Of a DNA stretch of 64,000 nt, positions 12,934 to 64,000 are shown piece after piece. The stretch is from Amphiscolops sp. MND2022. Its lineage: Eukaryota. Both the position numbers and the translations under genes were made by a program. The notes under the pieces are model-generated. The model was not told the origin of the DNA and ran no database searches. It saw only the letters and a program-made list of their open reading frames with translations. The stretch spans positions 54,622,001-54,686,000 of the forward strand of contig OZ076420.1 of assembly GCA_964187785.1 (NCBI GenBank), read 5' to 3'. Position 1 is the stretch's first letter, and each line of letters opens with the position of its first letter.

Positions 12934-13750
12934 GCTCTATCTCCCAGCACACAACATTTCATCTTCTAGAAAAATGCCACATTTCGCATGCACGTTTCTC
13001 ATCACAGTCTGAAAAGTATTGCAACCTTCCGGAGTAACAGCAGAGACGCCGATTTTAAATCTGTGGAATTGTTTGTTACTCGATCTACAACACTTTGCCT
13101 ATCGGCATGAGAATATTGCAGTACCACTGGCCCTTTGTTTGAAAGAATCATACGAAAACGTTTTCGAAACGGGCACTTAAAAGGAACAATCTAGCTCTCA
13201 AAACAAACGTTTTAAAGCTTCCAGAAACAATCTGTCTTAAAGAGTAAGATATAATCCAAAATAAATTCTGTATAAGCCTGCATTAACATGAGAAAAAGGT
13301 TCTAAGCCGCATTTCAAAATCTGCATTCAAATCGAAAAGTTTTACAATGAAATTTGCACGAAACGAAAAAACCACTAGTTGTACGCCAAGCACTAATACC
13401 ATTACGGGCATCAATGAAAATAGCTCTGAGAGTAGGAGCAACAACAAACCTCCAAAGTCATTCCAGGTTAAATCCTGATCTGAAACTAAGAATATGATGA
13501 TGCATGATAGGCTACTGTATTCTCACTACATATCTATCTCACTGCCTGCTTCGAGTGATTTCGCGAGTGGAGAAAAAATTAACGATCGTTCTACGTATTC
13601 GAGCCCAACGTCCCCCAAAAAAATCGAACTATTATTTTGAACGTGGTATGTATGACACCCCCTAAGATGTCCTCGTAAGTAGTTTGATATTATATACGAT
13701 GGCCTAATTTAGAGTGGGGGGGGGGGTTGGTTTAGTTCATAAAAATTTTT

Positions 13751-13821
13751 CCAAGTCCCGGATTCGAACCGGGGACCTCAGGGATGAAAATCAAAGAATC
13801 TAACCACTATGCCACGAGACC
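13751..13821 (-). pseudogene. tRNA-derived relic or SINE-like segment
   Basis: Minus strand GGTCTCGTGGCATAGTGGTTAG...GAGGTCCCCGGTTCGAATCCGGG has A and B boxes and a paired T-stem, but the acceptor and anticodon stems are unpaired. Confidence 0.55.
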
Positions 13822-13947
13822 TTCTCAACTGCTACAAACAGGTTCGTTATATAACGATCGTTCATTCATTTCACCAATACAGTTGTGCATGTACAATTGT
13901 TTTCTTCGCGTGACAAACGTCTGAAATGATTCTTTAGACCTATAGTA

Positions 13948-14173
13948 TGGTCCTGTATATTATAAGATAGATTGAATATCCGTCTAAGTTCATCGAATCT
14001 TAGCCACTTTAGACCTATATATTGGGTTCATGTTGTACTTATTTTCATATTGCTTTTGCACTTTTTTATCATGTCTGATGAACGTGTACTCAATGTTACC
14101 GAATTTCTAGCCTCTTGGAGAAATAAAGATATTCGGTCATACCTGGAAGAGCTGGGATGGCAACATGTGCCAG
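13948..14173 (+). pseudogene. Truncated 5' copy of the JmjC-like gene region found at 63766-64000 (opposite strand)
   Basis: High nucleotide similarity to the reverse complement of 63766-64000. Both encode MSDERVLNVTEFLASWRN.DIRSYL.ELGWQHVP, and similarity ends abruptly after GTGCCAG. Confidence 0.9.
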
Positions 14174-14669
14174 AAGGCTACGTGGAATCAGGTCTAATGA
14201 AATATATCTAAGAGAGGGGGCAAAACTGAGATCTAAATATATTGATCTGAATAATCAGGTCTGAAAATCCCTTCTAATTTGATCAAATTTGAGAAAAAAA
14301 GTAAGTCAATTAGGATCTAAAACTAAAAAGTGATATAAAATATAAAATGTGCCCCGGATATGTCCCCATTTCCTCTAGTGCCCCGCAGCCCCTTGGGGCC
14401 GCTTATATTCCCATCTTGTTAAGCGAGGTCGGACAGGAGCAAAGACCTAGCGGGAACGGAGATCGCGAAGATTTTGTTATCTGAGATTTCCTGCCTTTAA
14501 GATAATCCGTGAAGAAATACTCATTATTCACTCGAAAACTTATTTTACTTTTCTGATAAACATGTAAAAATATCGTCCAGCAATCATTTTCATTATTGAG
14601 CCAGTATTGGCCATTTCATTCCTCGCAATAGAGCCAATCAGAGTGAAGGAAGCCAAAAAGAAGTCTTCT

Positions 14670-23600: not shown

Positions 23601-26600
23601 ATTGTACTTCACTACTATAATTGATTCCAAAAAGATGAGACTTCTCTCTCTCTCTCTCAAAAACTCTAAAACTATTTAACCTTTTTTATTGAACAAGTAT
23701 ATCGTCCACGTTGTATCATTTCTGTAATGCAGGGTATTCGAGCAATAAGTTTTTGTGGCCAAATTTTAGCAGCCAGTTTGAAATCTTTGTAAAAAACAGT
23801 TTTCTGCGGGTCCTAGCTTGGGGTTTGAAGGGCCGAATGCTCCGCGTGTGCTTGTCATTCTTTGGATTGGGACCTGGGATATTTAAATTACCATAGTTCC
23901 TGCGTTGTGTCGTTTATTTTTCATGTAAAACATTTATATTTATAAAAATTTGTACTTCATTACTATAATTGATTCCAAAAAGAGGAGACTTCTCTCTCTC
24001 TCAAAAACTCTAAAACTATTTAACCTTTTTTATTGAACAAGTATATCGTCCACGTTGTATCATTTCTGTAATGCAGAGTATTCGAGCAACAAGTTTTTGT
24101 AGCTAAATTTTAGCAGCCAGTTTGAAATCTTTGTAAAAAACAGTTTTCTTCGGGTCCTAGCTTGGGGTTTGAAGGGCCGAATGCTCCGCGTGTGCTTGTC
24201 ATTCTTTAGATTGGGACCTAGGATCTTTAAATTAACATTGTGCCTGCGTTGTGTCGATTATTTTTCATGTAAAACATTTATGTTTATAAAAAATTGTACT
24301 TCACTACTATAATTGATTCCAAAAAGATGAGACTTCTCTCTCTCTCTCAAAAACTCTAAAACTATTTCACCTTTTTTATTGAACAAGTATATCGTCCACG
24401 TTGTATCATTTCTGTAATGCAGGGTATTCGAGCAACAAGTTTTTGTGGCCAAATTTCAGCAGCCAGTTTGAAATCTTTGTAAAAAACAGTTTTCTTCGGG
24501 TCCTAGCTTGGGGTTTGAAGGGCCGAATGCTCCGCGTGTGCTTGTCATTCTTTAGATTGGGACCTAGGATCTTTAAATTAACATTGTGCCTGCGTTGTGT
24601 CGATTATTTTTCATGTAAAACATTTAGGTTTATAAAAAATTGTACTTCACTACTATATTTGATTCCAAAAAGATGAGACTTCTCTCTCTCTCTCAAAAAC
24701 TCTAAAACTATTTAACCTTTTTTATTGAACAAGTATATCGTCCACGTTGTATCATTTCTGTAATGCAGGGTATTCGAGCAATAAGTTTTTGTGGCCAAAT
24801 ATTAGCAGCCAGTTTGAAATCTTTGTAAAAAACAGTTTTCTGCGGGTCCTAGCTTGGGGTTTGAAGGGCCGAATGCTCCGCGTGTGCTTGTCATTCTTTG
24901 GATTGGGACCTGGGATATTTAAATTACCATAGTTCCTGCGTTGTGTCGTTTATTTTTCATGTAAAACATTTATATTTATAAAAATTTGTACTTCATTACT
25001 ATAATTGATTCCAAAAAGAGGAGACTTCTCTCTCTCAAAAACTCTAAAACTATTTGACCTTTTTTATTGAACAAGTATATCGTCCCCGTTGTATCATTTC
25101 TGTAATGCAGGGTATTCGAGCAACAAGTTTTTGTGGCCAAATTTCAGCAGCCAGTTTGAAATCTTTGTAAAAAACAGTTTTCTTCAGGTCCTAGCTTGGG
25201 GTTTGAAGGGCCGAATGCTGCGCGTGTGCTTGTCATTCTTTGGATTGGGACCTAGGATATTTAAATTAACATTGTGCCTGCGTTGTGTCGTTTATTTTTC
25301 ATGTAAAACATTTATATTTATAAAAATTTGTACTTCATTACTATAATTGATTCCAAAAAGAGGAGACTTCTCTCTCTCAAAAACTCTAAAACTATTTGAC
25401 CTTTTTTATTGAACAAGTATATCGTCCCCGTTGTATCATTTCTGTAATGCAGGGTATTCGAGCAACAAGTTTTTGTGGCCAAATTTCAGCAGCCAGTTTG
25501 AAATCTTTGTAAAAAACAGTTTTCTTCGGGTCCTAGCTTGGGGTTTGAAGAGCCGAATGCTGCGCGTGTGCTTGTCATTCTTTGGATTGGGACCTAGGAT
25601 ATTTAAATTAACATTGTGCCTGCGTTGTGTCGTTTATTTTTCATGTAAAACATTTATATTTATAAAAATTTGTACTTCATTACTATAATTGATTCCAAAA
25701 AGAGGAGACTTCTCTCTCTCTCAAAAACTCTAAAACTATTTAACCTTTTTTATTGAACAAGTATATCGTCCACGTTGTATCATTTCTGTAATGCAGGGTA
25801 TTCGAGCAACAAGTTTTTGTGGCTAAATTTTAGCAGCCAGTTTGAAATCTTTGTAAAAAACAGTTTTCTTCGGGTCCTAGCTTGGGGTTTGAAGGGCCGA
25901 ATGCTCCGCGTGTGCTTGTCATTCTTTAGATTGGGACCTAGGATCTTTAAATTAACATTGTGCCTGCGTTGTGTCGATTATTTTTCATGTAAAACATTTA
26001 GGTTTATAAAAAATTGTACTTCACTACTATAATTGATTCCAAAAAGATGAGACTTCTCTCTCTCTCTCAAAAACTCTAAAACTATTTAACCTTTTTTATT
26101 GAACAAGTATATCGTCCACGTTGTATCATTTCTGTAATGCAGGGTATTCGAGCAATAAGTTTTTGTGGCCAAATTTTAGCAGCCAGTTTGAAATCTTTGT
26201 AAAAAACAGTTTTCTGCGGGTCCTAGCTTGGGGTTTGAAGGGCCGAATGCTCCGCGTGTGCTTGTCATTCTTTGGATTGGGACCTGGGATATTTAAATTA
26301 CCATAGTTCCTGCGTTGTGTCGTTTATTTTTCATGTAAAACATTTATATTTATAAAAATTTGTACTTCATTACTATAATTGATTCCAAAAAGAGGAGACT
26401 TCTCTCTCTCTCAAAAACTCTAAAACTATTTAACCTTTTTTATTGAACAAGTATATCGTCCACGTTGTATCATTTCTGTAATGCAGAGTATTCGAGCAAC
26501 AAGTTTTTGTAGCTAAATTTTAGCAGCCAGTTTGAAATCTTTGTAAAAAACAGTTTTCTTCGGGTCCTAGCTTGGGGTTTGAAGGGCCGAATGCTCCGCG

Positions 26601-28814
26601 TGTGCTTGTCATTCTTTAGATTGGGACCTAGGATCTTTAAATTAACATTGTGCCTGCGTTGTGTCGATTATTTTTCATGTAAAACATTTATGTTTATAAA
26701 AAATTGTACTTCACTACTATAATTGATTCCAAAAAGATGAGACTTCTCTCTCTCTCTCAAAAACTCTAAAACTATTTCACCTTTTTTATTGAACAAGTAT
26801 ATCGTCCACGTTGTATCATTTCTGTAATGCAGGGTATTCGAGCAACAAGTTTTTGTGGCCAAATTTCAGCAGCCAGTTTGAAATCTTTGTAAAAAACAGT
26901 TTTCTTCGGGTCCTAGCTTGGGGTTTGAAGGGCCGAATGCTCCGCGTGTGCTTGTCATTCTTTAGATTGGGACCTAGGATCTTTAAATTAACATTGTGCC
27001 TGCGTTGTGTCGATTATTTTTCATGTAAAACATTTAGGTTTATAAAAAATTGTACTTCACTACTATATTTGATTCCAAAAAGATGAGACTTCTCTCTCTC
27101 TCTCAAAAACTCTAAAACTATTTAACCTTTTTTATTGAACAAGTATATCGTCCACGTTGTATCATTTCTGTAATGCAGGGTATTCGAGCAATAAGTTTTT
27201 GTGGCCAAATATTAGCAGCCAGTTTGAAATCTTTGTAAAAAACAGTTTTCTGCGGGTCCTAGCTTGGGGTTTGAAGGGCCGAATGCTCCGCGTGTGCTTG
27301 TCATTCTTTGGATTGGGACCTGGGATATTTAAATTACCATAGTTCCTGCGTTGTGTCGTTTATTTTTCATGTAAAACATTTATATTTATAAAAATTTGTA
27401 CTTCATTACTATAATTGATTCCAAAAAGAGGAGACTTCTCTCTCTCTCAAAAACTCTAAAACTATTTAACCTTTTTTATTGAACAAGTATATCGTCCACG
27501 TTGTATCATTTCTGTAATGCAGAGTATTCGAGCAACAAGTTTTTGTAGCTAAATTTTAGCAGCCAGTTTGAAATCTTTGTAAAAAACAGTTTTCTTCGGG
27601 TCCTAGCTTGGGGTTTGAAGGGCCGAATGCTCCGCGTGTGCTTGTCATTCTTTAGATTGGGACCTAGGATCTTTAAATTAACATTGTGCCTGCGTTGTGT
27701 CGTTTATTTTTCATGTAAAACATTTATGTTTATAAAAAATTGTACTTCACTACTATAATTGATTCCAAAAAGATGAGACTTCTCTCTCTCTCTCAAAAAC
27801 TCTAAAACTATTTAACCTTTTTTATTGAACAAGTATATCGTCCACGTTGTATCATTTCTGTAATGCAGGGTATTCGAGCAACAAGTTTTTGTGACCAAAT
27901 TTCAGCAGCCAGTTTGAAATCTTTGTAAAAAACAGTTTTCTTCGGGTCCTAGCTTGGGGTTTGAAGGGCCGAATGCTCCGCGTGTGCTTGTCATTCTTTA
28001 GATTGGGACCTAGGATCTTTAAATTAACATTGTGCCTGCGTTGTGTCGTTTATTTTTCATGTAAAACATTTATGTTTATAAAAAATTGTACTTCACTACT
28101 ATAATTGATTCCAAAAAGATGAGACTTCTCTCTCTCTCTCAAAAACTCTAAAACTATTTAACCTTTTTTTATTGAACAAGTATATCGTCCACGTTGTATC
28201 ATTTCTGTAATGCAGGGTATTCGAGCAACAAGTTTTTGTGGCCAAATTTCAGCAGCCAGTTTGAAATCTTTGTAAAAAACAGTTTTCTTCGGGTCCTAGC
28301 TTGGGGTTTGAAGAGCCGAATGCTGCGCGTGTGCTTGTCATTCTTTGGATTGGGACCTAGGATATTTAAATTAACATTGTGCCTGCGTTGTGTCGTTTAT
28401 TTTTCATGTAAAACATTTATATTTATAAAAATTTGTACTTCATTACTATAATTGATTCCAAAAAGAGGAGACTTCTCTCTCTCTCAAAAACTCTAAAACT
28501 ATTTGACCTTTTTTATTGAACAAGTATATCGTCCACGTTGTATCATTTCTGTAATGCAGGGTATTCGAGCAACAAGTTTTTGTGGCCAAATTTCAGCAGC
28601 CAGTTTGAAATCTTTGTAGAAAACAGTTTTCTTCGGGTCCTAGCTTGGGGTTTGAAGGGCCGAATGCTCCGCGTGTGCTTGTCATTCTTTGGATTGGGAC
28701 CTAGGATATTTAAATTACCATAGTTCCTGCGTTGTGTCGTTTATTTTTCATGTAAAACATTTATATTTATAAAAATTTGTACTTCATTACTATAATTGAT
28801 TCCAAAAAGAGGAG

Positions 28815-28850
<36 letters not shown>

Positions 28851-31800
28851 AAAACTCTAAAACTATTTAACCTTTTTTATTGAACAAGTATATCGTCCAC
28901 GTTGTATCATTTCTGTAATGCAGGGTATTCGAGCAACAAGTTTTTGTGGCTAAATTTTAGCAGCCAGTTTGAAATCTTTGTAAAAAACAGTTTTCTTCGG
29001 GTCCTAGCTTGGGGTTTGAAGGGCCGAATGCTCCGCGTGTGCTTGTCATTCTTTAGATTGGGACCTAGGATCTTTAAATTAACATTGTGCCTGCGTTGTG
29101 TCGATTATTTTTCATGTAAAACATTTAGGTTTATAAAAAATTGTACTTCACTACTATAATTGATTCCAAAAAGATGAGACTTCTCTCTCTCTCTCAAAAA
29201 CTCTAAAACTATTTAACCTTTTTTATTGAACAAGTATATCGTCCACGTTGTATCATTTCTGTAATGCAGGGTATTCGAGCAATAAGTTTTTGTGGCCAAA
29301 TTTTAGCAGCCAGTTTGAAATCTTTGTAAAAAACAGTTTTCTGCGGGTCCTAGCTTGGGGTTTGAAGGGCCGAATGCTCCGCGTGTGCTTGTCATTCTTT
29401 GGATTGGGACCTGGGATATTTAAATTACCATAGTTCCTGCGTTGTGTCGTTTATTTTTCATGTAAAACATTTATATTCATAAAAATTTGTACTTCATTAC
29501 TATAATTGATTCCAAAAAGAGGAGACTTCTCTCTCTCTCAAAAACTCTAAAACTATTTAACCTTTTTTATTGAACAAGTATATCGTCCACGTTGTATCAT
29601 TTCTGTAATGCAGAGTATTCGAGCAACAAGTTTTTGTAGCTAAATTTTAGCAGCCAGTTTGAAATCTTTGTAAAAAACAGTTTTCTTCGGGTCCTAGCTT
29701 GGGGTTTGAAGGGCCGAATGCTCCGCGTGTGCTTGTCATTCTTTAGATTGGGACCTAGGATCTCTAAATTAACATTGTGCCTGCGTTGTGTCGTTTATTT
29801 TTCATGTAAAACATTTATGTTTATAAAAAATTGTACTTCACTACTATAATTGATTCCAAAAAGATGAGACTTCTCTCTCTCTCTCAAAAACTCTAAAACT
29901 ATTTAACCTTTTTTATTGAACAAGTATATCGTCCACGTTGTATCATTTCTGTAATGCAGGGTATTCGAGCAATAAGTTTTTGTGGCCAAATTTTAGCAGC
30001 CAGTTTGAAATCTTTGTAAAAAACAGTTTTCTGCGGGTCCTAGCTTGGGGTTTGAAGGGCCGAATGCTCCGCGTGTGCTTGTCATTCTTTGGATTGGGAC
30101 CTGGGATATTTAAATTAACATTGTGCCTGCGTTGTGTCGTTTATTTTTCATGTAAAACATTTATATTTATATAAATTTGTACTTCATTTCTATAATTGAT
30201 TCCAAAAAAGGGGAGACTTCTCTCTCTCAAAAACTCAAACTATTTACCCTTTTTTATTGAACAAGTATATCGTCCACGTTGTATCATTTCTGTAATGCAG
30301 GGTATTCGAGCAACAAGTTTTTGTGGCCAAATTTCAGCAGCCAGTTTGAAATCTTTGTAAAAAACAGTTTTCTTCGGGTCCTAGCTTGGGGTTTGAAGGG
30401 CCGAATGCTCCGCGTGTGCTTGTCATTCTTTAGATTGGGACCTAGGATATTTAAATCAACATTGTGCCTGCGTTGTGTCGTTTATTTTTGATGTAAAACA
30501 TTTATATTTATAAAAATTTGTACTTCATTACTATAATTGATTCCAAAAAGAGGAGATATCTCTCTCTCAAAAACTCTAAAACTATTTAACCTTTTTCATT
30601 GAACAATTATATCGTCCACGTTGTATCATTTCTGTAATGCAGGGTAATCGAGCAACAAGTTTTTGTGGCCAAATTTTAGCAGCCAGTTTGAAATCTTTGT
30701 AAAAAACAGTTTTCTTCGGGTCCTAGCTTGGGGTTTGAAGGGCCGAATGTTCCGCGTGTGCATGTCATTCTTTGGATTGGGACCTAGGATATTTAAATTA
30801 CCATTGTTCCTTCGTTGTGTCGTTTATTTTTCATGTGAAACATTTATATTTATAAAAATTTGTACTTCATTACTATAATTGATTCCAAAAAGAGGAGACT
30901 TCTCTCTCTCTCTCTCGAAAACTCTAAAACTATTTAACCTTTTTCATTGAACAAGTATATCGTCCACGTTGTATCATTTCTGTAATGCAGGGTATTCGAG
31001 CAACAAGTTTTTGTGGCCAAATTTCAGCAGCCAGTTTGAAATCTTTGTAAAAAACAGTTTTCTTCGGGTCCTAGCTTGGGGTTTGAAGGGCCGAATGCTC
31101 CGCGTGTGCTTGTCATTCTTTGGATTGGGACCTAGGATATTTAAATTACCATTGTTCCTGCGTTGTGTCGTTTATTTTTCATGTGAAAAATTTATATTTA
31201 TAAAAATTTGTACTTCATTACTATAATTGATTCCAAAAAGAGGAGACTTCTTTCTCTCTCAAAAACTCTTAAACTATTTAACCTTTTTTATTGAACAAGT
31301 ATATCGTCCACGTTGTATCATTTCTGTAATGCAGGGAATTCGAGCAACAAGTTTTTGTGGTCAAATTTTAGCAGCCAGTTTGAAATCTTTGTAAAAAACA
31401 GTTTTCTTCGGGTCCTAGCTTGGGGTTTGAAGGGCTGAATGCTCCGCGTGTGCTTGTCATTCTTCAGATTGGGACCTAGGATATTTAAATTAACATTGTG
31501 CCTGCGTTGTGTCGTTTATTTTTCATGTAAAACATTTATATTTATAAAAATTTGTAATTCATTACTATAATTGATTCCAAAAAGAGGAGACTTCTCTCTC
31601 TCTCAAAAACTCTAAAACTATTTAACCTTTTTTATTGAACATGTATATCGTCCACGTTGTATCATTTCTGTAATGCAGGGTATTCGAGCAACAAGTTATT
31701 GTGGCCAAATTTCAGCAGTCAGTTTGAAATCTTTGTAAAAAACAGTTTTCTTCGGGTCCTAGCTTGGGGTTTGATGGGCCGAATGCTCCGCGCGTGCTTG

Positions 31801-31980
31801 TCATTCTTTGGGTTGGGACCTAGGATATTTAAATTAACATTGTTCCTGCGTTGTGTCGTTTGATTTTCATGTAAAACATTTATATTTATAAAAGTTTGTA
31901 CTTCATTATCATTGACTCCTAAAAGAGAAGTCTTCTCTTTCAATAATAACTCGAAAACTATTTTACCTTTTTGATTGAAC
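14670..31980 (+). repeat. Satellite DNA array, about 50 monomers of ~345 bp with a variable (CT)n tract and higher-order repeats
   Basis: Near-identical tandem monomers. The repeated 'MYHFCNAG' ORFs recur every 342-364 bp and give HOR offsets of 6560 and 2410-2412 bp. Confidence 0.97.
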
Positions 31981-32900
31981 ATGTATATCGTCCAGGATGT
32001 ATCATTTATGTAATGCAGGGTTTCTGAGCAACACGTTTTTATGGCCAAATTTCAACGGTCATTTTCAAATCTTTGCCAAATAGCGTTTTTCTAGCAGCGT
32101 TGACTACGACTCGTGGAGTCTCATTTTGGTTCTACGCATCTCGAGATTGGTCAAAATTGGAACGCATTCGTACGAAATGCTTCCACAAATTGCTAGAGGT
32201 CAGCTTGGGAAAGCCCTTTATGACGTTTTTATTCCATATTTAGTCTTCAACAGAAATAGCAATCTTTTTGATTGAAAGTGTGCCAGCTTTAGCTTGTGAA
32301 TTTGCATGGTGAAAATGTAAACAAAACTAGTTTACCTTTTCGATTGAACATGTATATCGTCCAGGATGTATCATTTATGTAATGAAGGGTTTCTGAGCAA
32401 CACGTTTTTGTGGCCAAATTTCAACGGTCATTTTCAAATCTTTGCAAAATAGCGTTTTTCTAGCAGCCTTGACTACGACTCGTGGAGTCTCATTTTGGTT
32501 CTACGCATCTCGAGATTGGTCAAAATTGGAACGCATTGGTACGAAATGATTCTACAAATTGCTAGAGGACAGCTTGGGAAAGCCCTTTATGACGTTTTTA
32601 TTCCATATTTGGTCTTCAACAGAAATAGCAATCTTTTTGATTGGAGGTTTTTCAGCGTTAGCTTGTGAAATTGCATGGTGAAATTGTAGCCAAAACTAGT
32701 TTACCTTTTTGATTGAACATGTATATCGTCCAGGATGTATCATTTATGTAATGCAGGGTTTCTGAGCAACACGTTTTTGTGGCCAAATTTTAGCAGTCAT
32801 CTTCAAGTCTCCGCAAAAAAGCATTTTTCTAGCATCCTTGACTACGTCCCGTGGAGTCTCATTTTTGTTGTACCTATCTCGCGATTGCTCAACATTGGAA
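31980..32900 (+). repeat. Two and a half ~370-bp divergent units sharing only their first part with the 345-bp satellite
   Basis: ACATGTATATCGTCCAGGATGTATCATTTATGTAATG occurs at about 31980, 32350 and 32718. The second halves (GACTACGACTCGTGGAGTCTCATTTT...) are absent from the main monomer. Confidence 0.85.
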
Positions 32901-33990: not shown

Positions 33991-34689
33991 AGTTTCTTTT
34001 ATAGCAAGGGGGACAAACCAGTTTCCTGTGAGTTTTTATACATGTTTTTCAGCAATTTGTAAAGTTGTGCTCTTTCATGTGTGTTACCTTTCTTGGATGG
34101 TTTTTATCTGATCGTTCATTTGACTGATGCGCTCTCCAATAACATGAGAAAAACAACACTGAATCCACAAAATTACTGAAGCATTTAAAACCACTTGAAA
34201 ATTTCTACAACAAATACTTGGGAACAATACAAAGTGAAAATGATTACAACACATATTAGTCAGAAGCTATTTTACTCAACAATTGATGGAAGCATGGTCG
34301 CCTCCCGATCAGGGCATGCACCAAAGAGAGTACAGTGAATCCGAGCTGGAGGACCAATTCAGTAACATGGACGAATCTGTTGAGGAGCGAAGTCCTCCGA
34401 GAAATCCCTTTATTGACTTGGAATCAGTGAGAGTGGCTCATGATCACTTACTCGCTCGCTCACGCAAGGGTGATGAAAGAGGGGCATTTGCCAGCATCGG
34501 AGCCTCTGGAAAAATATGGGCGATTGTGACTTGCGGATGATTGCCGTTCAATTCATCCCATGTGGGACTTGATGATATCTCTTCCTCTTCATGTCCCTAT
34601 TCTGGTTCATCCACAATGTCTTGCTCAACATGAACATCTCTGATCATGTAGTGACCATGGGGTAAAGTTGAGACGTCGTCATCTAATAC

Positions 34690-37600
34690 ATAACGCTTGT
34701 CATCAAAGGAGCTGAGACACCTTGTTCGTCTCGATTGTTGGTAATTGTTGCATTCGCGAGCCTATTCTCATGTTTACAGTCTTGTAGGCCTCGCCGGTTC
34801 TCAATACTTTTTTGTATAGGTCATGATTCAGTTCCTTCTGATCGAATCGGCAGACACCCTTTGCCGATAGCTTCTGCCTTCCTCCAATCATGATTGAATA
34901 CATTTTGGGTTTGAGTACGACAAACTCTTCGATTGGGTCTCCTCCGAGTTCATCCTTGAACTTGAGGGTGACCATTCTGTTAACAGCGCTATAGAGGTGA
35001 TGTTCTTTAGGGTAATTGGAGAGATCAATATGTTAGCTCTTCATAAAAGTGTGTATTTGATCTCATAAAACAAAGAATCTGTGTCAGAATATAACACGAA
35101 ACAGTTCAAGTACTTTTTCATTACATTATAGCGGGAATTGAACATGTGGAATTGGGCCAAGTCTAAAACAGATGCTCCGACAATTGTTGGTTTGTTCTAT
35201 AAGATGGATCTTTTCCTTGACGAAATAGCTGCAAGATTTTCATTGAAGATTTTAAACTCACAAAAGAATGGGGTGTCTGTTCTCCTCAAGACTTTCTCGG
35301 TTGCTTATTAGCAGAACAGTGAGGCGGTTTCGCTTGCTCTCGAGCGTTTCTCCGTAGCATCAGTTATTCATTAATTTGAAGAAACTCTCTTCGAACTGTT
35401 TCGCGATTCTTTTCTTTTTGCGGTATTTAGCTCCATATATGGCTCCAGCCAGCAAGATTGTTTGAATTTCAAAACCCGGTGTACTTTTTTGACTTCAATG
35501 CCAAGGCTAATGTAAAACTTCAGCGTAGTATAGTCAACAGTGTAGTTGCTTTTGTTTGACAGTGACTGAATCAACTTTGTCCCCTGACTATAAGGTCTAG
35601 TTACACCCATTATTTCTAGTAGCTCTTGCTGCTTCTCTCCAAGGCTTGTGTAGTATATTCGCTCTTTTGTTGGAGCTAGTGGAAAATCTTGATATCCGTC
35701 ATGAAATTTGTCGGGGTAATGCAAGTCTACTTCTAGAATGTATCCTTCTTCAGAGTCGTCAGTCGTTTCCAAGATTCTGTTGGGATCAATGTTTTGAACT
35801 GTTTCGAAGCTAATCAATGGCAGTGGTAGCTTTTCCATGACACCCCCAAACAAATTGTTTGCGTCCAATAGCACCCCGTAAGTGTTATAGTCATTATAGT
35901 TATGGTCAGTCACGTACCTGTTGTTAGCTTTGAAGAACTTGTCAAAAACGGAAGCAACACCACCTCGAATCATGTTTTCCACCTTCTCTAGATGCTCACG
36001 GTCTGTTAGAAGCGCGGCATTTTTTCAAGAAAACGTCACCGGACAAATTCGATCATGTGAAGTAATGGGCGCTATCCAAGCCGTATGTCTTGTAACAGAG
36101 GCTTCTAAACTCTTCGAAAACACATGCTAAGATTAGGGTGTGTTTTGAGATACAAGTCATGGTAGTCTCCCAAATTTAAGCACTCAAATGTTTGGAATAC
36201 ATTTTCGGCATGCTTCCATTCCTCTTGTGTCAACATTATTGCCCCGTTGCGCAGTGAATCCTGCCATTGGTATCTTGGTGGGAGCTTTGTCTCGAAAAAT
36301 TTATCAAAACTGTCAAAGTAGGAGTAGGGATAATAACCCTTTTGATGCAAGAGGTTTCGGTCTGATTCAGGATAGTCAGCGAAGCAACTGTCAAGTATCT
36401 TGAACTTCTCCTTTGGCAGATAGCTTGCAAGTTTTTCGAGTGAGAAGGCCATAAACCTGAACGTAGATACTCAAGTTTTTGTCAGTCCGTTTTTGTCTTG
36501 ATAAGTTCTCACAGGTACTCCGATTGTCAAGGTGATGTATTTCTCATCAGTCGACGGAATCACTTTTCGTCAGATTTGAACTTGTGAATGTACAAGCACA
36601 CAAGATGAAAGTCATAGTTTGACAAAATGTGTTCCATTACTGGAAAGAAATTGACAGTCTTCCTTTTGAGATTGCAGTCTGGGTGCGCAAAACCTAAAAT
36701 TTTTACCGAGTAGCGACAGTGGTCGACGACTTTTTCCTCCTCCAGGTGTCTGACTATTCCAAACTGACCTTCGCAGATCCACCAAAGTTGAGCTTCTGTG
36801 GTCTTTCAAGGGATGGATCGCGAAAGTACCGGTAGTCAGGGTTTCCGTGCTCGATTCCAACACTACAAAAACCGCTTGATTTGTGAATTCCCGTGACACT
36901 TGTTGACTGATTACTATTTTGGCATCCAGCCAGGGGTTGAAAGATTGACTCCAAGTCAAAGTAAATAACTACTGGTGCAAAGCAGCGAGCTTTGGTTTTA
37001 AACTTGAGTTTATTTTTCTCTGGTAACGGCATCTTGACTACTGCTGGTTCATGTTGCAAGCAACTGATATGATGCCGTTTGAAAGTGCTTCCATTCTTGC
37101 ATACGTGGAAACAGTTTCTACAGAGGACTCTGTGAGTTGGTGTCGTGGTTCCTTTGACAAGACTGACTAGCCTCAAGAGATACAGTATCAGAATGTAATG
37201 ATACACTTGTACTTCATCGACCAGCAACACGTCAATTTCAAGGTTGTCCTTGGTTTCCCGGGTTACTCGAAGGGCACGAGTTGTTTTTCGCTGTATCTGA
37301 ACACGTTGATTTTTCAATCATTCAATTTTTCGAATCGAAGCATCTGACCAAAGCCCATTGGCATTTCAAACTCACCTTCAGCTTGATGAGCTAACGGGTT
37401 GCATCGCGAATAAGTGTCCGGGCTTGTCCGTTTCGCTATTGAATCGCTTCCTGGGTTATAGAGTAACAGTCAATGCTTTAGGTGACATGCAGCCGTGAAA
37501 CAGTACAAGAAACAATTGTGATCTTGACGGTTCCTAATGTTTAATAACAAGCGAGACGCGTCCAATTCGGGTGGAGTTGGCAGAAAGGAGGATCCTCGAA

Positions 37601-37952
37601 TTGGGTTAAATGTTGCAAACTTGACATCCAGATCGACAATTTTCTCCAAGATCCAAACACTTCCAGAAGCTGTGAACGTGAATAAAGCGTTTAGTAATTC
37701 ATCCACTGCACTGAGGAAATCGTCTTGCGGCAGACTAGTCCCACACACTGGCACCATTTGTGACCGAAGTAGGAGTTCAGTTTCCTCATCTATTGTTTGT
37801 TTTGAAAGCTCAACTTTCAAAATTAGTTGCATTTTCCGGCCTGTGCGATTTGCATTTTCGCTAACCAGTTGACCAATTTGCGGTTTGACGTCAGTCATGA
37901 ACTGCATCAAGTCATTTTCTCCTGATCCATTAAGTGGCCGGGGACTCCCCAA
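34690..37952 (-). pseudogene. Fragmented protein-primed family B DNA polymerase (Polinton/Maverick/adintovirus type)
   Basis: Motifs in the expected order: VVIYFDLESI, DHC...AHPDCNL (endonuclease VII-like), HNLSNYDFH, FRFMAFSLEKL, KGYYPYSYFDS, IRGGVAS, LDANNLFG, GYILEVDLHYP..FPLAP, YSDTDS (35074-35091), KFKDE...LKPKMYS..AKGV. Many frameshifts. Confidence 0.93.
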
Positions 37953-46623: not shown

Positions 46624-48230
46624 GTGACGACACCTGGTGGGACCCAATCTTTCGATAGGCTTTTGGTAGCAGCTCACAGTTGCTTCAAGTCATTGATTAT
46701 TGACGGTGAAATTGTTTCTAATGATTTTAGGGCGACATTATTGTCTACATTGACGGTTGAAATGGAAAAGAAAACTCATTTGTCTTTAGATATGCAAAAA
46801 CGATCCCTTATTGATGCACTACAATTGCAAAACTTTCCTAATTTGCCATCCACGGACACACTTATGAGTGCAACCATTGAAAACAGTTTACCTTTTGATG
46901 CTCAGCTGAATAGAGGTCACTCACAATCAAATGAATCTTTTCAAGAACAACGGAGTATATGTGAGTCAATCAAAGCAGTTATAAGGGGTTTCCTAGCTAT
47001 TAGAGAAAATCAGATCGTTAAATGCGAGTTGATAATGGGTCCACCAGGAACTGGAAAAACTTTCATTTGTTCTCTATGTCTCTTTTATGCATTAGCTTTT
47101 GGTCTATTCTGTCATGTCACAAGCTTAGCTGCACGCAGAGCCAGACAGTTTGGAGGCATCCACATTAATAGGCTATGTTGTTTGTCAATAATAAACGAAC
47201 TTTTGGTTTCAAAATTAGCTCAAAAAGCATTGAAAAAACTTCATTGTCAACCAGAACGAAAAGCTCTTCTGTTGAGGTTGGACGTCCTTATGATTGAGGA
47301 GGTTGGCTTATCTAGTGCCCAACATTGGGCAGTAATTGATTTGATTTTACAAAATTTGAGGGAAGTTAATGTACCTTTTGGAGGTGTTTTGGTTTTAGCT
47401 ACAGGTGATCCTTGTCAACTGCCATCCATTACAGGTCACAATGTCTTTTGTAGTCCGTTAATGATCACTTCTCTCAATATTCATTTGCTGAATTATTTTG
47501 TCCGAATGGAAGACCCTCGTGGTCAAGTTATGCTGAAAAAAATGTGGGAAAAACCAATTCCTTATGACAAAATAACTGCTATTGTGAAGTGTATAAGTGA
47601 AGAATGTCACTTTGTAGCTGAATGGGAACATTTGACGGATCAAACCATAATGAACGGATAACGAACCATAATTTTGGTACGCAAAAAAGCTGTCGAGGAA
47701 ACGTTAGAGCGACATCAAAAAAGTCCCGAGATGAGGTATGCCCTAAACATGCTTGTAACTGGAAATCAGCTGAAATGGAAGGAACGAAGTGTTTGAGTAG
47801 AGAAGTTAGAGAACCTGAAAAGTTGTTTGTACATATGTTTGTTGTTCTGAAAATCACTGAAAATGGTAATGATTTGAATATTCCTCAAGGAACTCAGTGT
47901 GGTGATTAAAATGCCAACTGATACAGACAATTCCATTGTTGTGGAATTTTTGCCTGCTGGTAAGCATTCACTTTCACACGATGACATCAGAATGGGATTG
48001 ATCGATCAATGGCGTACAGTCAAGTTCGCACCAAGGTCTGGTTTAATTCACACTTTTAAAGGTTGCTCGTTAAGGAGGATACAAAACACTCTGTGCAACA
48101 ACGTCGCTGCAACTGTCCACACTTTATTGGAAGATACTTTTCCTCAATTGGCCACGTCGATTTCACACATTTGAGGCAATTAGAGTATTTGGTTAGCGTC
48201 CCAGTTGTTTGTCATTGTAAGTAGAGTCAA
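46624..48230 (+). pseudogene. PIF1-family SF1 helicase domain
   Basis: Walker A GPPGTGKT, Walker B variant IEE, PFGG..GDPCQLP, and C-terminal ATVH and QLFVIVSRV. Confidence 0.92.
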
Positions 48231-56699: not shown

Positions 56700-57148
56700 A
56701 TGTTCGAATGTCCCGGTTTTTGATTTTTGATACGTCTTCCAAAAATCATGCAGAGCACGAGTGCTCCTTTTTTAAAAATTGCTCAGCTTGTGTTTGGGAT
56801 AGAATTCCCGCTGAAGTTCGTTTTTTATCTGCCACCGCTATGTCTGCTAAAAGTCAATTGGCTCCTGAAAATTGCTCAATATTAGAACAAGACGCTGCTC
56901 TTTCGTCTGTAGTTGTCGATGAATGGCACAAATACCGGCGAGCCAATTCCCTACAATATTCGTCTCAAGACATTTTTCATGTTGAGTTATCTGTCACCGT
57001 GAGTGATGCTAAAGTAATACAACATCGATCTCAGTACGTTCATGTCTCTTATACTACCGTATGTGGTTTTCAAACCTTGTTCATACGTAACAACACAGAT
57101 ATTTCCAATAGGTTTCTACTTCTAAGCAACCTCAATAATTTAATATAA
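56700..57148 (+). CDS. Possible exon of an unknown gene, cut by the duplication breakpoint
   Basis: ttttttcag acceptor at ~56700 followed by a 146-codon open frame with HECSFFKNCSAC; no family recognised. Confidence 0.3.
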
Positions 57149-58944
57149 ATCTATTTTTGTCTCATTTTTGAATATTTTTAGAGTAAAATTGGTTTCGATT
57201 TTCGTTTGCATATTTTTTTTCAAACCAAGCAAAAACAGTTGGGTGTCTTTCCAAATGATTGATCACGTGGTTCATACTGGAACGAAACTGGTTTATTAAG
57301 TTTGATATATGACTGCATTAACCTCACATTGCCGTAAAATTAATCACAGATTTGGACGCTATTCATCAATGTTCGGTATATCCACGTTGGGTTTATCGTT
57401 GGTGCTTCAAGATTTTCATCCGACAAAGAGCTCGAAAATGTTGAATGTGGAAATATTCCTGTAGCAAACATCATCGGACAAGTCTCACCTTGTTTCGAAA
57501 AATTTCCCCCAAACATTTTTTTAGCTAACTTTTTGGCTGAAAATTTGGGTCATGATTTATTTGAGCTTCTTCTGGCTCTCCTCTATCCCTTATACGTCCC
57601 TCTGTACTTTGGTAATTTGCCTAAATCACGCTAGATTCTGTGACGAACGTGGACTTTTCAGTGTACGTCTGTCGCGAAAAAACCCTTTAACCTTTTTCCA
57701 TCATAAACGCCGACTGAAAAGTTTCATCCATTATAACAAGCCGAGAACGGTTTGTCGGCACCTGCTCCGGGGTGAAATTTTCATAAGAAGGACGTGGTAT
57801 TATGGTAGTTCTCGCGAAATTTGAAAGAAAGAAAAGATCGAAAATCCTGGAAAAATCGGATAATTATATTGTGTTGACGTCAGGATTCAATATGTTTTCA
57901 GTTATCATAAACCACTTGTATTTTTTATCATTTAGTTATTTTCAATTCGAGGCTTTTTGTTACACGCAAAAACTCTCTAAAAACAAGTTTTGAGGTTCTT
58001 TGCATGACTTTTTTTTACATATGTTCCCATCGAAATGAAAAGGTTTCATTGCTAATGTAATATATTGAATTTTTACGAAAATTGCTGACGACTATTCCTT
58101 CATACCGAAATCAATTTTGAATATAACACTTGTATTCACAATGTGTTGTTGGCTGACTTTCGATTCGCATTTTCAAATTTTCCTTATCATTTTTTCGCAA
58201 GTGTTAGCGAAGCGCAGCTTCGCCTCTGTTATATTGTTCGTCGAAAATTGTTTTTGGAAGATTTTTTTCCTAATATTGTTCAAGAATTGATACCAGTTGA
58301 TTTCACCGTTTTCTTTGTAGAGTAATTCTAGATGAGTTAAAAATGAAGGTAATAATTCTAACGTTTACTATTAGTTGAAGACAAATTTTCGAACGCTCCT
58401 GCTAACATTTACTTCCTCTCTTAAAAATCAGCAGTTGTTGCCTTTGGTACTTTTGTTACCTCGCTATTTTTGAAATAATTCTGAGCATTTTCAGTGACTG
58501 GGCAAATGCTCCGCGTGTTCTGTTAAGTTGAAATGTTCAGAAGAATTCTAATAAAGTATCACAGGTGTTGAATACTAAACACTGTACAAACGGTAAGTTA
58601 CTATTTCCCGAAAAGGAAAAGTCCATGTATTTATTTTGCAGAATTGGAGGGGCGTTGTGCCATTAAATTGGTCTGTTGTGTTATCATCACGATAGTTGCT
58701 TACTTTACACGATCATATTCTGTAATATCTATTGGAATCTTGTAATAAACTCTTGGAATATGTCATCCCAGCCCTCCAATCAAATCGTGGATGAAAAAGA
58801 AAGGCCGACCACTTCAATAGCCGACGACAATGCAAATGCGGAAAAATTCTTGCCGAGGGTTTTCAGCAATGCAAATCGTGCTGCCACATTGCTGCTGACA
58901 TTTCGGACTCTGAACAATTTGAGGTTACCATTGAACTGCCATCG

Positions 58945-59330
58945 GTGAAACTACCTTACTCTCAATACTGTGAGAATTGTTGGCGTCAGTCAACTGATTT
59001 CTATCCTCTTGTGTTCCATGATGTCGCTTCTGATACTTTACTTCAACGACAGTTTTCAGCTTGTGACTTCAAAAAAGAGCAGTTAAGGCTCTGCACACTG
59101 TGCCACCTTTATTTGCAACGCGATACGACCCACCAAAGAAGACAACCCTCGTTCGCCAACGCTTGGCTCTGTCTTTTGGACAATTTTTCAAATACAAGTT
59201 ATTCTTGCGGCCTGTGGAGTGTATTACCTGTCCATATAAACTGCAGCTGGTTACATAAAATTGCTTGAGAATGTCGAACTTTCCGAAATCGTTTCAATTT
59301 TGTGGCCATCCCTACTTTTGTGGATTCTGG
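58945..59330 (+). pseudogene. CxxC...LCxxC...NAW domain relic (copy 1)
   Basis: YCENC...YPL...LCTLCHLY...FANAW parallels HCKKC...YYP...LCPNCISY...WKNAWPAV at 42090-42290. Confidence 0.5.
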
Positions 59331-62096
59331 AATATTGAAAAGGATTCTGGACGGTGTATTTGCATGTTTATCAGAAAAGTAAAATAAGTTTCCGAGTGAA
59401 TAATGAGTATTTCTTCACGGATTATCTTGATGGCAGGAAATCTCAGAGAACAAAATTGGCCACAATCGGCTCAATCATTGAGAACCAGTGTAGTAGTAAT
59501 TATCACAATTTGGTCTGCTCTTTCACTTGGAAACTGCTGCAGCCGCCTTCTCACATCGCTTCTCATACTATTTCTCCAACCGTGCTTAACAAAAAGGTTT
59601 TGAATGGAAAGTTTAGAACTGGAGAAACCCTTTGGAAAAAAAAGGAATACCTTTTTCATTTTCTTGAGCTTTCAAAAGTCCTCTACGTCCAGTCGGCTGG
59701 TTTGCCATCGGCTTCCACTTCTTGGATATTTTTGGTCTACCACGACGAAAAGTTGTGGCAGAAGGAAGACCTCTGGCATCGATAGGATTGAGCTGACAAA
59801 CAACCTCAGATCTTTCATCTTCATTGTCCAATAAACAGACTGACTGCTGCAAATTAGTATTTTCCAACAAAAATCTCCGATGACCGGTGCCTAGCCTGGG
59901 ACAAAATGTGTTCAGAAGCTGTGATTTCCGCTAGCAATCACCCTTCAATTGGCCCTCCCATCCCGTCACGAGCGATGGTCCCTCCGAAAGGGTCGAAACA
60001 CTATGACATGATAACGCTAGCTGCATCAAAATGCTCGTTTCCTTCGAAACAAAAAACTCAATTTTTTGAACCGCGTTGTTCTGAGGACCACGTTCCAGAA
60101 ACCTTACGAAGGATTGGACACTTTGAATATCTTTGAAGAGATTCAAAGAAGCCATTCCTCGTTCGGCGATCAGAAAAACTTTTAAACCAAGCGGGGTAAA
60201 AGAAACAGAATTATCGTCTCCTTCTTCTAAATGTGCTTCGTAACAACACAGATATTTCCAATAGGTTTCTACTTCTAAGCAACCTTAATAATTTAATATA
60301 AATCTATTTTTGTCTCATTTTTGAATATTTTTAGAGTAAAATTGGTTTCGATTTTCGTTTGCATATTTTTTTTCAAACCAAGCAAAAACAGTTGGGTGTC
60401 TTTCCAAATGATTGATCACGTGGTTCATACTGGAACGAAACTGGTTTATTAAGTTTGATATATGACTGCATTAACCTCACATTGCCGTAAAATTAATCAC
60501 AGATTTGGACGCTATTCATCAATGTTCGGTATATCCACGTTGGGTTTATCGTTGGTGCTTCAAGATTTTCATCCGACAAAGAGCTCGAAAATGTTGAATG
60601 TGGAAATATTCCTGTAGCAAACATCATCGGACAAGTCTCACCTTGTTTCGAAAAATTTCCCCCAAACATTTTTTTAGCTAACTTTTTGGCTGAAAATTTG
60701 GGTCATGATTTATTTGAGCTTCTTCTGGCTCTCCTCTATCCCTTATACGTCCCTCTGTACTTTGGTAATTTGCCTAAATCACGCTAGATTCTGTGACGAA
60801 CGTGGACTTTTCACTGTACGTCTGTCGCGAAAAATCCCTTTAACCTTTTTCCATCATAAACGCCGACTGAAAAGTTTCATCCATTATAACAAGCCGAGAA
60901 CGGTTTGTCGGCACCTGCTCCGGGGTGAAATTTTCATAAGAAGGACGTGGTATTATGGTAGTTCTCGCGAAATTTGAAAGAAAGAAAAGATCGAAAATCC
61001 TGGAAAAATCGGATAATTATATTGTGTTGACGTCAGGATTCAATATGTTTTCAGTTATCATAAACCACTTGTATTTTTTATCATTTAGTTATTTTCAATT
61101 CGAGGCTTTTTGTTACACGCAAAAACTCTCTAAAAACAAGTTTTGAGGTTCTTTGCATGACTTTTTTTTACATATGTTCCCATCGAAATGAAAAGGTTTC
61201 ATTGCTAATGTAATATATTGAATTTTTACGAAAATTGCTGACGACTATTCCTTCATACCGAAATCAATTTTGAATATAACACTTGTATTCACAATGTGTT
61301 GTTGGCTGACTTTCGATTCGCATTTTCAAATTTTCCTTATCATTTTTTCGCAAGTGTTAGCGAAGCGCAGCTTCGCCTCTGTTATATTGTTCGTCGAAAA
61401 TTGTTTTTGGAATATTTTTTTCCTAATATTGTTCAAGAATTATACCAGTTGATTTCACCGTTTTCTTTGTAGAGTAATTCTAGATGAGTTAAAAATGAAG
61501 GTAATAATTCTAACGTTTACTATTAGTTGAAGACAAATTTTCGAACGCTCCTGCTAACATTTACTTCCTCTCTTAAAAATCAGCAGTTGTTGCCTTTGGT
61601 ACTTTTGTTACCTCGCTATTTTTGAAATAATTCTGAGCATTTTCAGTGACTGGGCAAATGCTCCGCGTGTTCTGTTAAGTTGAAATGTTCAGAAGAATTC
61701 TAATAAAGTATCACAGGTGTTGAATACTAAACACTGTACAAACGGTAAGTTACTATTTCCCGAAAAGGAAAAGTCCATGTATTTATTTTGCAGAATTGGA
61801 GGGGCGTTGTGCCATTAAATTGGTCTGTTGTGTTATCATCACGATAGTTGCTTACTTTACACGATCATATTCTGTAATATCTATTGGAATCTTGTAATAA
61901 ACTCTTGGAATATGTCATCCCAGCCCTCCAATCAAATCGTGGATGAAAAAGAAAGGCCGACCACTTCAATAGCCGACGACAATGCAAATGCGGAAAAATT
62001 CTTGCCGAGGGTTTTCAGCAATGCAAATCGTGCTGCCACATTGCTGCTGACATTTCGGACTCTGAACAATTTGAGGTTACCATTGAACTGCCATCG

Positions 62097-62500
62097 GTGA
62101 AACTACCTTACTCTCAATACTGTGAGAATTGTTGGCGTCAGTCAACTGATTTCTATCCTCTTGTGTTCCATGATGTCGCTTCTGATACTTTACTTCAACG
62201 ACAGTTTTCAGCTTCTGACTTCAAAAAAGAGCAGTTAAGGCTCTGCACACTGTGCCACCTTTATTTGCAACGCGATACGACCCACCAAAGAAGACAACCC
62301 TCGTTCGCCAACGCTTGGCTCTCTGTCTTTTGGACAATTTTTTCAAATACAAGTTATTCTTGCGGCCTGTGGAGTGTATTACCTGTCCATATAAACTGCA
62401 GCTGGTTACATAAAATTGCTTGAGAATGTCGAACTTTCCGAAATCGTTTCAATTTTGTGGCCATCCCTACTTTTGTGGATTCTGGAATATTGAAAAGGAT
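62097..62500 (+). pseudogene. CxxC...LCxxC...NAW domain relic (copy 2)
   Basis: Same as copy 1, continuing NAWLSVFWTIF...LWSVLP...SW. Confidence 0.5.
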
Positions 62501-63085
62501 TCTGGACGGTGTATTTGCATGTTTATCAGAAAAGTAAAATAAGTTTCCGAGTGAATAATGAGTATTTCTTCACGGATTATCTTGATGGCAGGAAATCTCA
62601 GAGAACAAAATTGGCCACAATCGGCTCAATCATTGAGAACCAGTGTAGTAGTAATTATCACAATTTGGTCTGCTCTTTCACTTGGAAACTGCTGCAGCCG
62701 CCTTCTCACATCGCTTCTCATACTATTTCTCCAACCGTGCTTAACAAAAAGGTTTTGAATGGAAAGTTTAGAACTGGAGAAACCCTTTGGAAAAAAAAGG
62801 AATACCTTTTTCATTTTCTTGAGCTTTAAAAAGTCCTCTACGTCCAGTCGGCTGGTTTGCCATCGGCTTCCACTTCTTGGATATTTTTGGTCTACCACGA
62901 CGAAAAGTTGTGGCAGAAGGAAGACCTCTGGCATCGATAGGATTGAGCTGACAAACAACCTCAGATCTTTCATCTTCATTGTCCAATAAACAGACTGACT
63001 GCTGCAAATTAGTATTTTCCAACAAAAATCTCCGATGACCGGTGCCTAGCCTGGGACAAAATGTGTTCAGAAGCTGTGATTTCCG

Positions 63086-63976
63086 CTAGCAATCACCCTT
63101 CAATTGGCCCTCCCATCCCGTCACGAGCGATGGTCCCTCCGAAAGGGTCGAAACACTATGACATGATAACGCTAGCTGCATCAAAATGCTCGTTTCCTTC
63201 GAAACGAAAAACTCAATTTTTTGAACCGCGTTGTTCTGAGGACCACGTTCCAGAAACCTTACGAAGGATTGGACACTTTGAATATCTTTGAAGAGATTCA
63301 AAGAAGCCATTCCTCGTTCGGCGATCAGAAAAACTTTTAAACCAAGCGGGGTAAAAGAAACAGAATTATCGTCTCCTTCTAAATGTGCTTCGGTGAACCA
63401 CGGACCCAACGTGATGATCGCATCGGTTGCGGTAATTTTCATATTTTCCGGTAGGGTGAAATCTAACCCGGACATTGGCAAGGTCCATCCTTTAGACCTG
63501 TTCTGGAATACTTTGTCAGAACAAGTGATTTGAGGTCTAAGGCGTCTTCGCCTCTTGATCGGAAACTTCCTACAGAAGGTTTCAACTTCTTTCCGGGTAG
63601 AGCATGCTCTAATCTCTTTCATGAACAGTTCATTGATGTGGAAAAGATCCTGGTTGGTGATGGCAACCGGTTTGACGAACTTCCCGTCTTCCATGAAGTC
63701 GGTCATTTCACCGCACAATTTCTCTCTAAACTCCGTGGAAACCTTAACATTCGTTCCGTCAATTGCTGGCACATGTTGCCATCCCAGCTCATCCAGATAT
63801 GAACGAATATCTTCATTTCTCCAAGAGGCTAGAAACTCGGTAACATTGAGAACACGTTCATCAGACATGATAAAAAAGTGCAAAAGCAATCTGAAAATAT
63901 GTACAACATGAACCCAATATATAGGTCTGAAGTGGCTAAGAATCGATGAACACAGTCGTATAGGAGTGATGCTCAA
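63086..63976 (-). CDS. Intronless JmjC-like (cupin, 2OG-Fe(II) dioxygenase) ORF; likely start MSDERV at ~63870
   Basis: FTEAHLE (HxE), LGLKVFLIA (conserved G.K) and SCHSVSTL...SLVTGWE (distal His) have JmjC-type spacing. The C-terminal third is also duplicated at 59931-60240. Confidence 0.72.
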   Translation of the reverse strand: MSITPIRLCSSILSHFRPIYWVHVVHIFRLLLHFFIMSDERVLNVTEFLASWRNEDIRSYLDELGWQHVPAIDGTNVKVSTEFREKLCGEMTDFMEDGKFVKPVAITNQDLFHINELFMKEIRACSTRKEVETFCRKFPIKRRRRLRPQITCSDKVFQNRSKGWTLPMSGLDFTLPENMKITATDAIITLGPWFTEAHLEGDDNSVSFTPLGLKVFLIAERGMASLNLFKDIQSVQSFVRFLERGPQNNAVQKIEFFVSKETSILMQLALSCHSVSTLSEGPSLVTGWEGQLKGDC

Positions 63977-64000
63977 TCTACCTAATAATATACAGGACCA

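Follow-up and report, generated by a model that had tools for sequence, protein, structure and literature searches.

What is the gene near the end of a 64,000-nucleotide stretch of the genome of Amphiscolops sp. MND2022 (assembly GCA_964187785.1, contig OZ076420.1, positions 54,622,001 to 54,686,000; this whole stretch is called the window here), and what might it do for the DNA that carries it? A preliminary description, made from the letters alone, had proposed a mobile JmjC-like dioxygenase, carried as transposon cargo and perhaps linked to Rep-helicase open reading frames (ORFs) elsewhere in the window. The fold and the mobility have held; the link to a Helitron has not, and the copy in the window turns out to be a broken fragment. 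The ORF is very probably a decayed accessory gene of a Maverick/Polinton, encoding a JmjC Fe(II)/2-oxoglutarate (2OG) oxygenase which we propose serves to keep the element transcribed. The identity of the gene, as distinct from its role, is carried by the JmjC fold, the cofactor-binding residues of the family, the place of the gene inside a complete Maverick, its independent insertions and the purifying selection on it.

Positions 63086-63976 do hold, on the minus strand, a frame that stays open throughout, as had been reported. Its plausible start is the ATG at 63868, with the TTG-started stretch upstream of it probably non-coding, and from there 260 amino acids (protein P0001, 63089-63868, minus strand) are encoded before the frame ends at a TAG at 63086-63088. 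The frame is thus real and at the same time cut short by this stop, which is a sense codon in intact copies; the intact relative P0002 has 368 amino acids. Read on past the stop, the window frame continues to the next stop at 62768 with no other break, giving a full-length coding remnant of 366 codons (62768-63868, minus strand) that is collinear with P0002 and, apart from the in-frame stop, differs from it in length by two 3-bp deletions. The open part comprises an N-terminal helical/beta part and the double-stranded beta-helix core, while the C-terminal helices and a basic tail, whose AT-hook-like RGRP core lies at 62888-62899 (minus strand), are lost beyond the stop. The HxE...K...H motif noticed earlier is indeed present, as H162-x-E164, K178 and H237, and it maps to the near-invariant family columns H163, E165, K180 and H239 (P0002 numbering). 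T159-x-x-H162-x-E164, in WFTEAHLE (63377-63394, minus strand; the H162-x-E164 codons at 63385-63377), holds the predicted 2OG-contacting Thr and the first two predicted iron ligands; K178 in GLKVF (63335-63337, minus strand) is the predicted 2OG-binding lysine, and H237 in SCHSV (63158-63160, minus strand) the predicted third iron ligand.

Using the single window protein, searches of Pfam and PDB gave no match; a word-index protein search detected only three close copies, all from the same genome and one ENA assembly, and AF2 run on the four close copies alone reached a pLDDT of only 34. An exhaustive HMMER search with P0002 returned 163 cluster representatives at E<=1e-3, including full-length proteins of 346-394 amino acids with 27-39% identity to P0002. 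Among the clusters looked up there was no named relative and none from NCBI or UniRef, the sources being ENA or Logan assemblies only; a scan of IMG/VR found no relative, and one of JGI metagenomes gave only contigs of 1-3 kb, without context. The family alignment has the signature WFTxGHxExGGDDS ... GxKLFLIA ... QPALCAHxVLT ... GWEA. H163, E165, K180 and H239 are kept in about 89-93% of 126 sequences, a set that includes many decayed element copies. K180 (kept in 93% of covered sequences) and T160 (85%) align to GEK and YTD of PHF8/KDM7, where we take the corresponding Lys and Thr to have roles in 2OG binding. In several members, P0002 among them, the C-terminus is a basic tail built around RGRP, which we take to resemble an AT-hook or a nuclear localisation signal.

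Compared with PDB sequences, the family profile matches only KDM7, PHF8 and PHF2 (E 0.04-1.3), with FT.gHvE aligned to YTDFHVD, GkK to GEK and HaVlT to HAVLT, such that the HxD, K and H positions coincide. The structure prediction and Foldseek search that had been suggested as a check on the fold bear it out: with a natural intact copy as query and the alignment of 126 sequences, AF2 gave a confident model (pLDDT 89.6, pTM 0.84), and all 50 listed Foldseek matches are JmjC enzymes, the best being ceKDM7A at E 2.5e-9. VIA-align placed ceKDM7A at Z 14.8 over 255 residues and PHF2, PHF8, KIAA1718 and KDM2A at Z 14.4-14.7, with KDM6, JMJD6, JMJD5 and FIH at Z of about 13. The features by which JmjC Fe(II)/2OG oxygenases are recognised -- the fold, the iron triad HxD/E...H, and the 2OG Lys together with a Thr at His-3 -- are all found. 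With KDM7/PHF8/PHF2 and KDM2 (JHDM1) the protein shares the JmjC double-stranded beta-helix together with the N- and C-terminal elements on either side of it (Z 14-14.8, 240-260 residues), and T-x-x-H-x-D/E...K...H aligns residue for residue; unlike them, it is encoded by a mobile element, consists of a single domain of 368 amino acids with a short basic tail, and is only 12-18% identical. On the evidence of the model, then, the family is a divergent, unannotated JmjC clade made up of the catalytic domain alone, with the KDM2/7 demethylases as its nearest structural relatives.

The intact carrier was found by joining L001 and L007, overlapping stretches of one contig, into a reference element of 18607 bp. 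It is bounded by terminal inverted repeats (TIRs) of 188 bp, 93.6% identical and 18.6 kb apart, which start AGTAGTTTG; a perfect 6-bp target-site duplication (TSD), ATTATT, borders the element at either end. AG termini and a 6-bp target duplication are hallmarks of Polintons. The JmjC-like gene begins about 200 bp in from the left TIR and reads towards the interior of the element, tail-to-tail with the large minus-strand gene for a protein-primed DNA polymerase of family B (PolB). The element also holds a few tandem repeats in its interior and two ORFs, of 225 and 90 amino acids. Its PolB has a 1446-aa homologue, among whose relatives PF03175, the protein-primed PolB domain, is present, and this domain is matched at E 2e-12 in the sister copy L020. 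An rve integrase (PF00665) is encoded at L007 6583-7470 (E 8.8e-12). The match to Peptidase_C5 (adenain) is weak in L001 (E 0.031) and reaches E 1.4e-7 in the related L006, and a Pox_A32-like ATPase match (E 4.9e-4) falls below the cut-off. That the gene is transposon-borne cargo, as had been supposed, is thus seen directly: it sits within elements that have TIRs, a TSD, PolB and integrase.

At least 11 contigs of the assembly bear copies or fragments of the gene, in agreement with the earlier view of its region as multicopy. L020 begins precisely at the TIR start and remains 99% identical for 11.5 kb, with an unrelated flank; L002 is a third, diverged copy (84-91%) with another flank, and L003 a rearranged copy, about 99% identical to L001, again with another flank. 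The shared termini that had been proposed as a test of mobility were thus found, in that L020, L002, L003 and a second copy in the window (copy A, below) all begin at the same TIR terminus and differ in their flanks. These copies are independent insertions of one Maverick/Polinton family, some of them very young. In Logan contigs from four public runs of one study, the summed word depth of the gene exceeds that of the flank at 62400-62507 by a factor of roughly 2 to 13 (about 8 in run X1), an excess that is consistent with a repeat and is not a copy number.

The dN/dS comparison (nonsynonymous against synonymous divergence) among copies that the preliminary description called for gives dS 0.156, dN 0.053 and dN/dS 0.34 for the window copy and L001, with a synonymous excess significant by Fisher's test (p 1e-5); the ratio is 0.32 for L002 against L001 and 0.52 for the window copy against L002. 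Part of the change is neutral and comes from the decayed copies, so that the constraint in active lineages was stronger than these figures suggest. Since dN/dS is about 0.3 and the catalytic residues are conserved across the family, the codon comparisons show the gene to have been kept by purifying selection between element lineages.

Several features of the carrier family were observed along the way. At the far end of the element, just inside the other TIR, a 90-aa gene at L007 2612-2884 (plus strand) encodes an EGF domain (PF00008, E 6.8e-6). In L003 the PolB part (17676-20444, corresponding to L001 15006-17776) is inverted within an otherwise 99%-identical copy. PolB is split into two minus-strand ORFs, at 14226-16889 and 17124-18632 in L001 and at 14232-15164 and 15279-18446 in L020; the split points differ between these 99%-identical copies and L003 reads through one of the gaps, which could be short introns or independent disruptions. 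In the PolB group represented by L006 1028-5365 and L020 15282-18446 (both minus strand), the polymerase domain is preceded by C2H2 zinc fingers at the N-terminus (E 5e-6) and by a weakly matched Endonuclease VII-like segment, and some relatives carry PF07498 (Rho_N); this combination of zinc fingers and Endonuclease VII-like segment is an unusual PolB fusion.

The JmjC family is not confined to Mavericks. Distant paralogues (P0005, P0007 and P0028) lie inside Gypsy-type long terminal repeat (LTR) elements of the same assembly, antisense to gag-pol and between pol and an env-like ORF of 581-870 amino acids; at two of these loci the flanking LTRs are 99.7% identical, and in a second assembly P0013 is arranged likewise. 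They belong to the same family, at 27-39% identity and with the same motifs and length, and differ from the window gene in their carrier, that of the latter being a self-synthesising DNA Maverick, and in the tree, where the Maverick-borne clade stands apart. The third ORF of the Gypsy-type elements (L004 6986-9091, L005 6556-9168, L018 7772-9517 and L019 7325-9220, all minus strand) has no Pfam match; those of L004 and L005 are 49% identical, and it is presumably an envelope-like gene. In a third sample, P0082 (21% identity) is again placed tail-to-tail with the 1446-aa protein-primed PolB, at a locus that also holds an adenain protease. The tree shows the Maverick-borne P0002 clade as its own lineage, joined to the LTR-borne clades in a polytomy; the deepest split separates these from the P0082 group. 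This placement indicates that the module has moved between element classes; as the polytomy is open, the tree leaves the order of Maverick- and LTR-borne forms unsettled and we claim no donor.

How such a gene could serve its element may be pictured as follows. The intact gene would supply a 368-aa, single-domain JmjC oxygenase, closest in predicted structure to KDM7/PHF8/PHF2/KDM2 and followed by the basic AT-hook-like tail. This protein, if it is an active Fe(II)/2OG oxygenase, would enter the nucleus and be drawn to DNA by its tail; there, where the element would be chromatinised by the host, it could remove repressive lysine methylation from the element's chromatin, or alternatively hydroxylate another chromatin or host protein, and in either case the element would stay transcribed. 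The anti-silencing demethylase role is one that we infer. A wider version, which we put forward tentatively and think doubtful as it stands, is that one stand-alone JmjC clade forms an exchangeable "chromatin eraser" module, common to at least two unrelated classes of animal elements, kept by selection and removing the host's repressive histone methylation.

A number of observations weigh against the proposed gene and role. The Pfam JmjC model (PF02373) stays below threshold, with no match in the window protein or P0002 and a match in only 1 of 32 family members (E 0.0098), which is a limit of the sensitivity of that sequence model and not a criterion of fold. No capsid genes were identified in the element, whose protease and ATPase matches are, as given above, weak. 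The four public runs that hold the sequence include none recorded as RNA, and all are kept as contigs. No PHD, CXXC, Tudor or F-box/LRR domain was found in the protein by Pfam, unlike in bona fide KDM2/7 demethylases, and in the absence of such reader domains the substrate is not fixed by the protein's architecture; many JmjC enzymes are hydroxylases of proteins or RNA. Lastly, the Maverick-borne relative P0082, from another sample, has Ile in place of the first His, being either a dead copy or one with a non-catalytic role.

The chief alternative accepts a Maverick-borne JmjC fold and differs over its use: the protein might be a hydroxylase or demethylase of non-histone substrates, like JMJD6, FIH, JMJD5 or TYW5, acting for instance on a protein of the element itself or on a host factor for restriction or translation, or it might be non-catalytic like Epe1. 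We consider this possible, though on balance rather unlikely. JMJD6, JMJD5 and FIH score Z 12.9-13.2 and TYW5 has a Foldseek E of 3.9e-8; the missing histone-reader domain (Pfam) and the loss of the first His in P0082 fit it as well, and a non-enzymatic role has been described for Epe1 (PMC7192584). What speaks for the KDM2/7 side is that the best matches, in sequence and in structure alike, are consistently KDM7/PHF8/PHF2/KDM2, over some 255 residues that include parts N-terminal to the core, and that the basic AT-hook-like tail suggests targeting to chromatin or DNA.

The other two alternatives concern the carrier, and both were rejected. The window does contain a Helitron-like Rep-helicase region, at about 41-48.8 kb, with a PIF1-like helicase match at 46624-47658, and the gene had been suspected of linkage to it; the repeat unit of the gene, however, ends at 62493 and has no DNA in common with that region, and at four other loci a Maverick houses the gene and no Rep-helicase adjoins it. 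Cargo of a Helitron is thus a most improbable reading: the carrier has TIRs, a TSD, protein-primed PolB and integrase, and the Helitron, at about 41-48.8 kb, stands apart from it as an element of its own. Scarcely less improbable is a host or domesticated gene whose copies are segmental duplications of a host locus. A frame open for 260 codons and a dN/dS below 1 would suit such a gene, but the copies begin exactly at the TIR terminus amid unrelated flanks and with a TSD, the window copy is interrupted by a stop, has deletions and belongs to an element that is itself truncated, and the clusters looked up contain no NCBI, UniRef or otherwise named relative.

With the Maverick/Polinton accessory gene preferred, its nearest precedent is found in Amoebidium, whose endogenised giant viruses carry expanded KDM4-like, JmjC-only genes (Sci Adv 2024, PMC11244446); the authors discuss these as part of the interplay between host chromatin and virus (PMC11244446). 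The two cases share a stand-alone JmjC domain, free of reader domains, on integrated virus-like DNA in a holozoan genome. They differ in subfamily (KDM4-like there, closest to KDM2/7 here), in carrier (a giant virus against an 18.6-kb Maverick) and in host (a protist against an animal). A functional analogue of the proposed anti-silencing role is Epe1 of fission yeast, a JmjC protein which is described as opposing heterochromatin (PMC6317313, PMC7192584). Epe1, in contrast, is a host gene and has been proposed to act at least partly without catalysis; the likeness is one of description only. No JmjC cargo of Mavericks, Polintons or LTR retroelements was found in the full-text literature, in which subscription papers are incompletely covered, and this is weak evidence. 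The new part is the Maverick as carrier of a JmjC family.

The window itself holds two fragments of this Maverick family. Copy B, which contains the ORF, occupies 62493-64000 on the minus strand and is 91.5% identical to positions 263-1768 of the reference. The fragment breaks off at 62493, and the window ends before its TIR would be reached. What it has in common with three other loci is the DNA between the end of the window and 62493. A tandem duplication of two 3.15-kb units (57086-63392, with 57086-60240 equal to 60239-63392 at 99.5% identity) has its boundary inside the gene, at 63392, such that the 3' third of the ORF and the 3' two-thirds of the gene lie within the duplication and a second copy of the 3' part is found at 59616-60239. 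Each unit consists of about 900 bp of Maverick and 2.25 kb of unrelated DNA. The duplication is young relative to the roughly 8.5% divergence of the Maverick fragment, and later than the insertion of copy B.

Copy A, an older second Maverick on the plus strand, is collinear over 13678-37933 with L001 9612-18289. Its left TIR (13678-13872) starts AGTAGTTTG and is followed by the first 35 codons of the JmjC-like gene (14071-14175), the remainder of which is deleted. This is the inverted partial copy at 13.9 kb that had been noticed before: 13977-14173 is 93% complementary to 63766-63962, and by BLAST 13948-14173 matches 64000-63766 at 89% identity. A remnant from just 3' of the gene (14473-14597, plus strand) matches 62486-62611 and 59331-59456. 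Beyond it, at 14600-32100 (plus strand), lies a satellite with a unit of 345 bp, present about 50 times and grown out of the few internal repeats found at the corresponding place in the reference Maverick; it fills about 17 kb of the window, its source being the two to four units at L001 11440-12800, and it would be a satellite born inside a Maverick. Copy A also retains the 225-aa ORF, between the satellite and PolB, and a degraded protein-primed PolB (34426-37934, minus strand), where the element is truncated at reference position 8682 of 18607. Identity between the two copies is about 89-93%, and their identity to the young family about 91%. Both are dead: B has the stop, small deletions and a truncated element, and A is internally deleted. 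The gene copy in the window therefore carries no functional weight of its own.

Two further features of the window may be mentioned. A 55-bp stretch just upstream of the gene's ATG (63912-63965) is a very abundant short repeat, with a summed word depth in run X1 of about 15000 in the Logan contigs, as compared with about 300 for the gene. At 3749-5680 (minus strand), an ORF of 643 amino acids shows a weak match to an ANG-1-like domain (E 6.6e-4) and may belong to a host gene or to some other element.

The silencing of mobile DNA by histone methylation in the host is well studied, while enzymes carried by the elements themselves that erase silencing marks are, to our knowledge, hardly known in animals. 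The intact relatives of the window gene present a gene of JmjC fold, invisible to Pfam, as a selected passenger of a young virus-like Maverick, with paralogues that ride in LTR retroelements of the same genome; an accessory module has passed here between DNA and RNA elements. If the enzyme is active, it would offer a directly testable case of counter-silencing by mobile elements, and if the more tentative idea of an exchangeable eraser module were true, it would represent a general, element-encoded counter-defence against heterochromatin silencing in animals.
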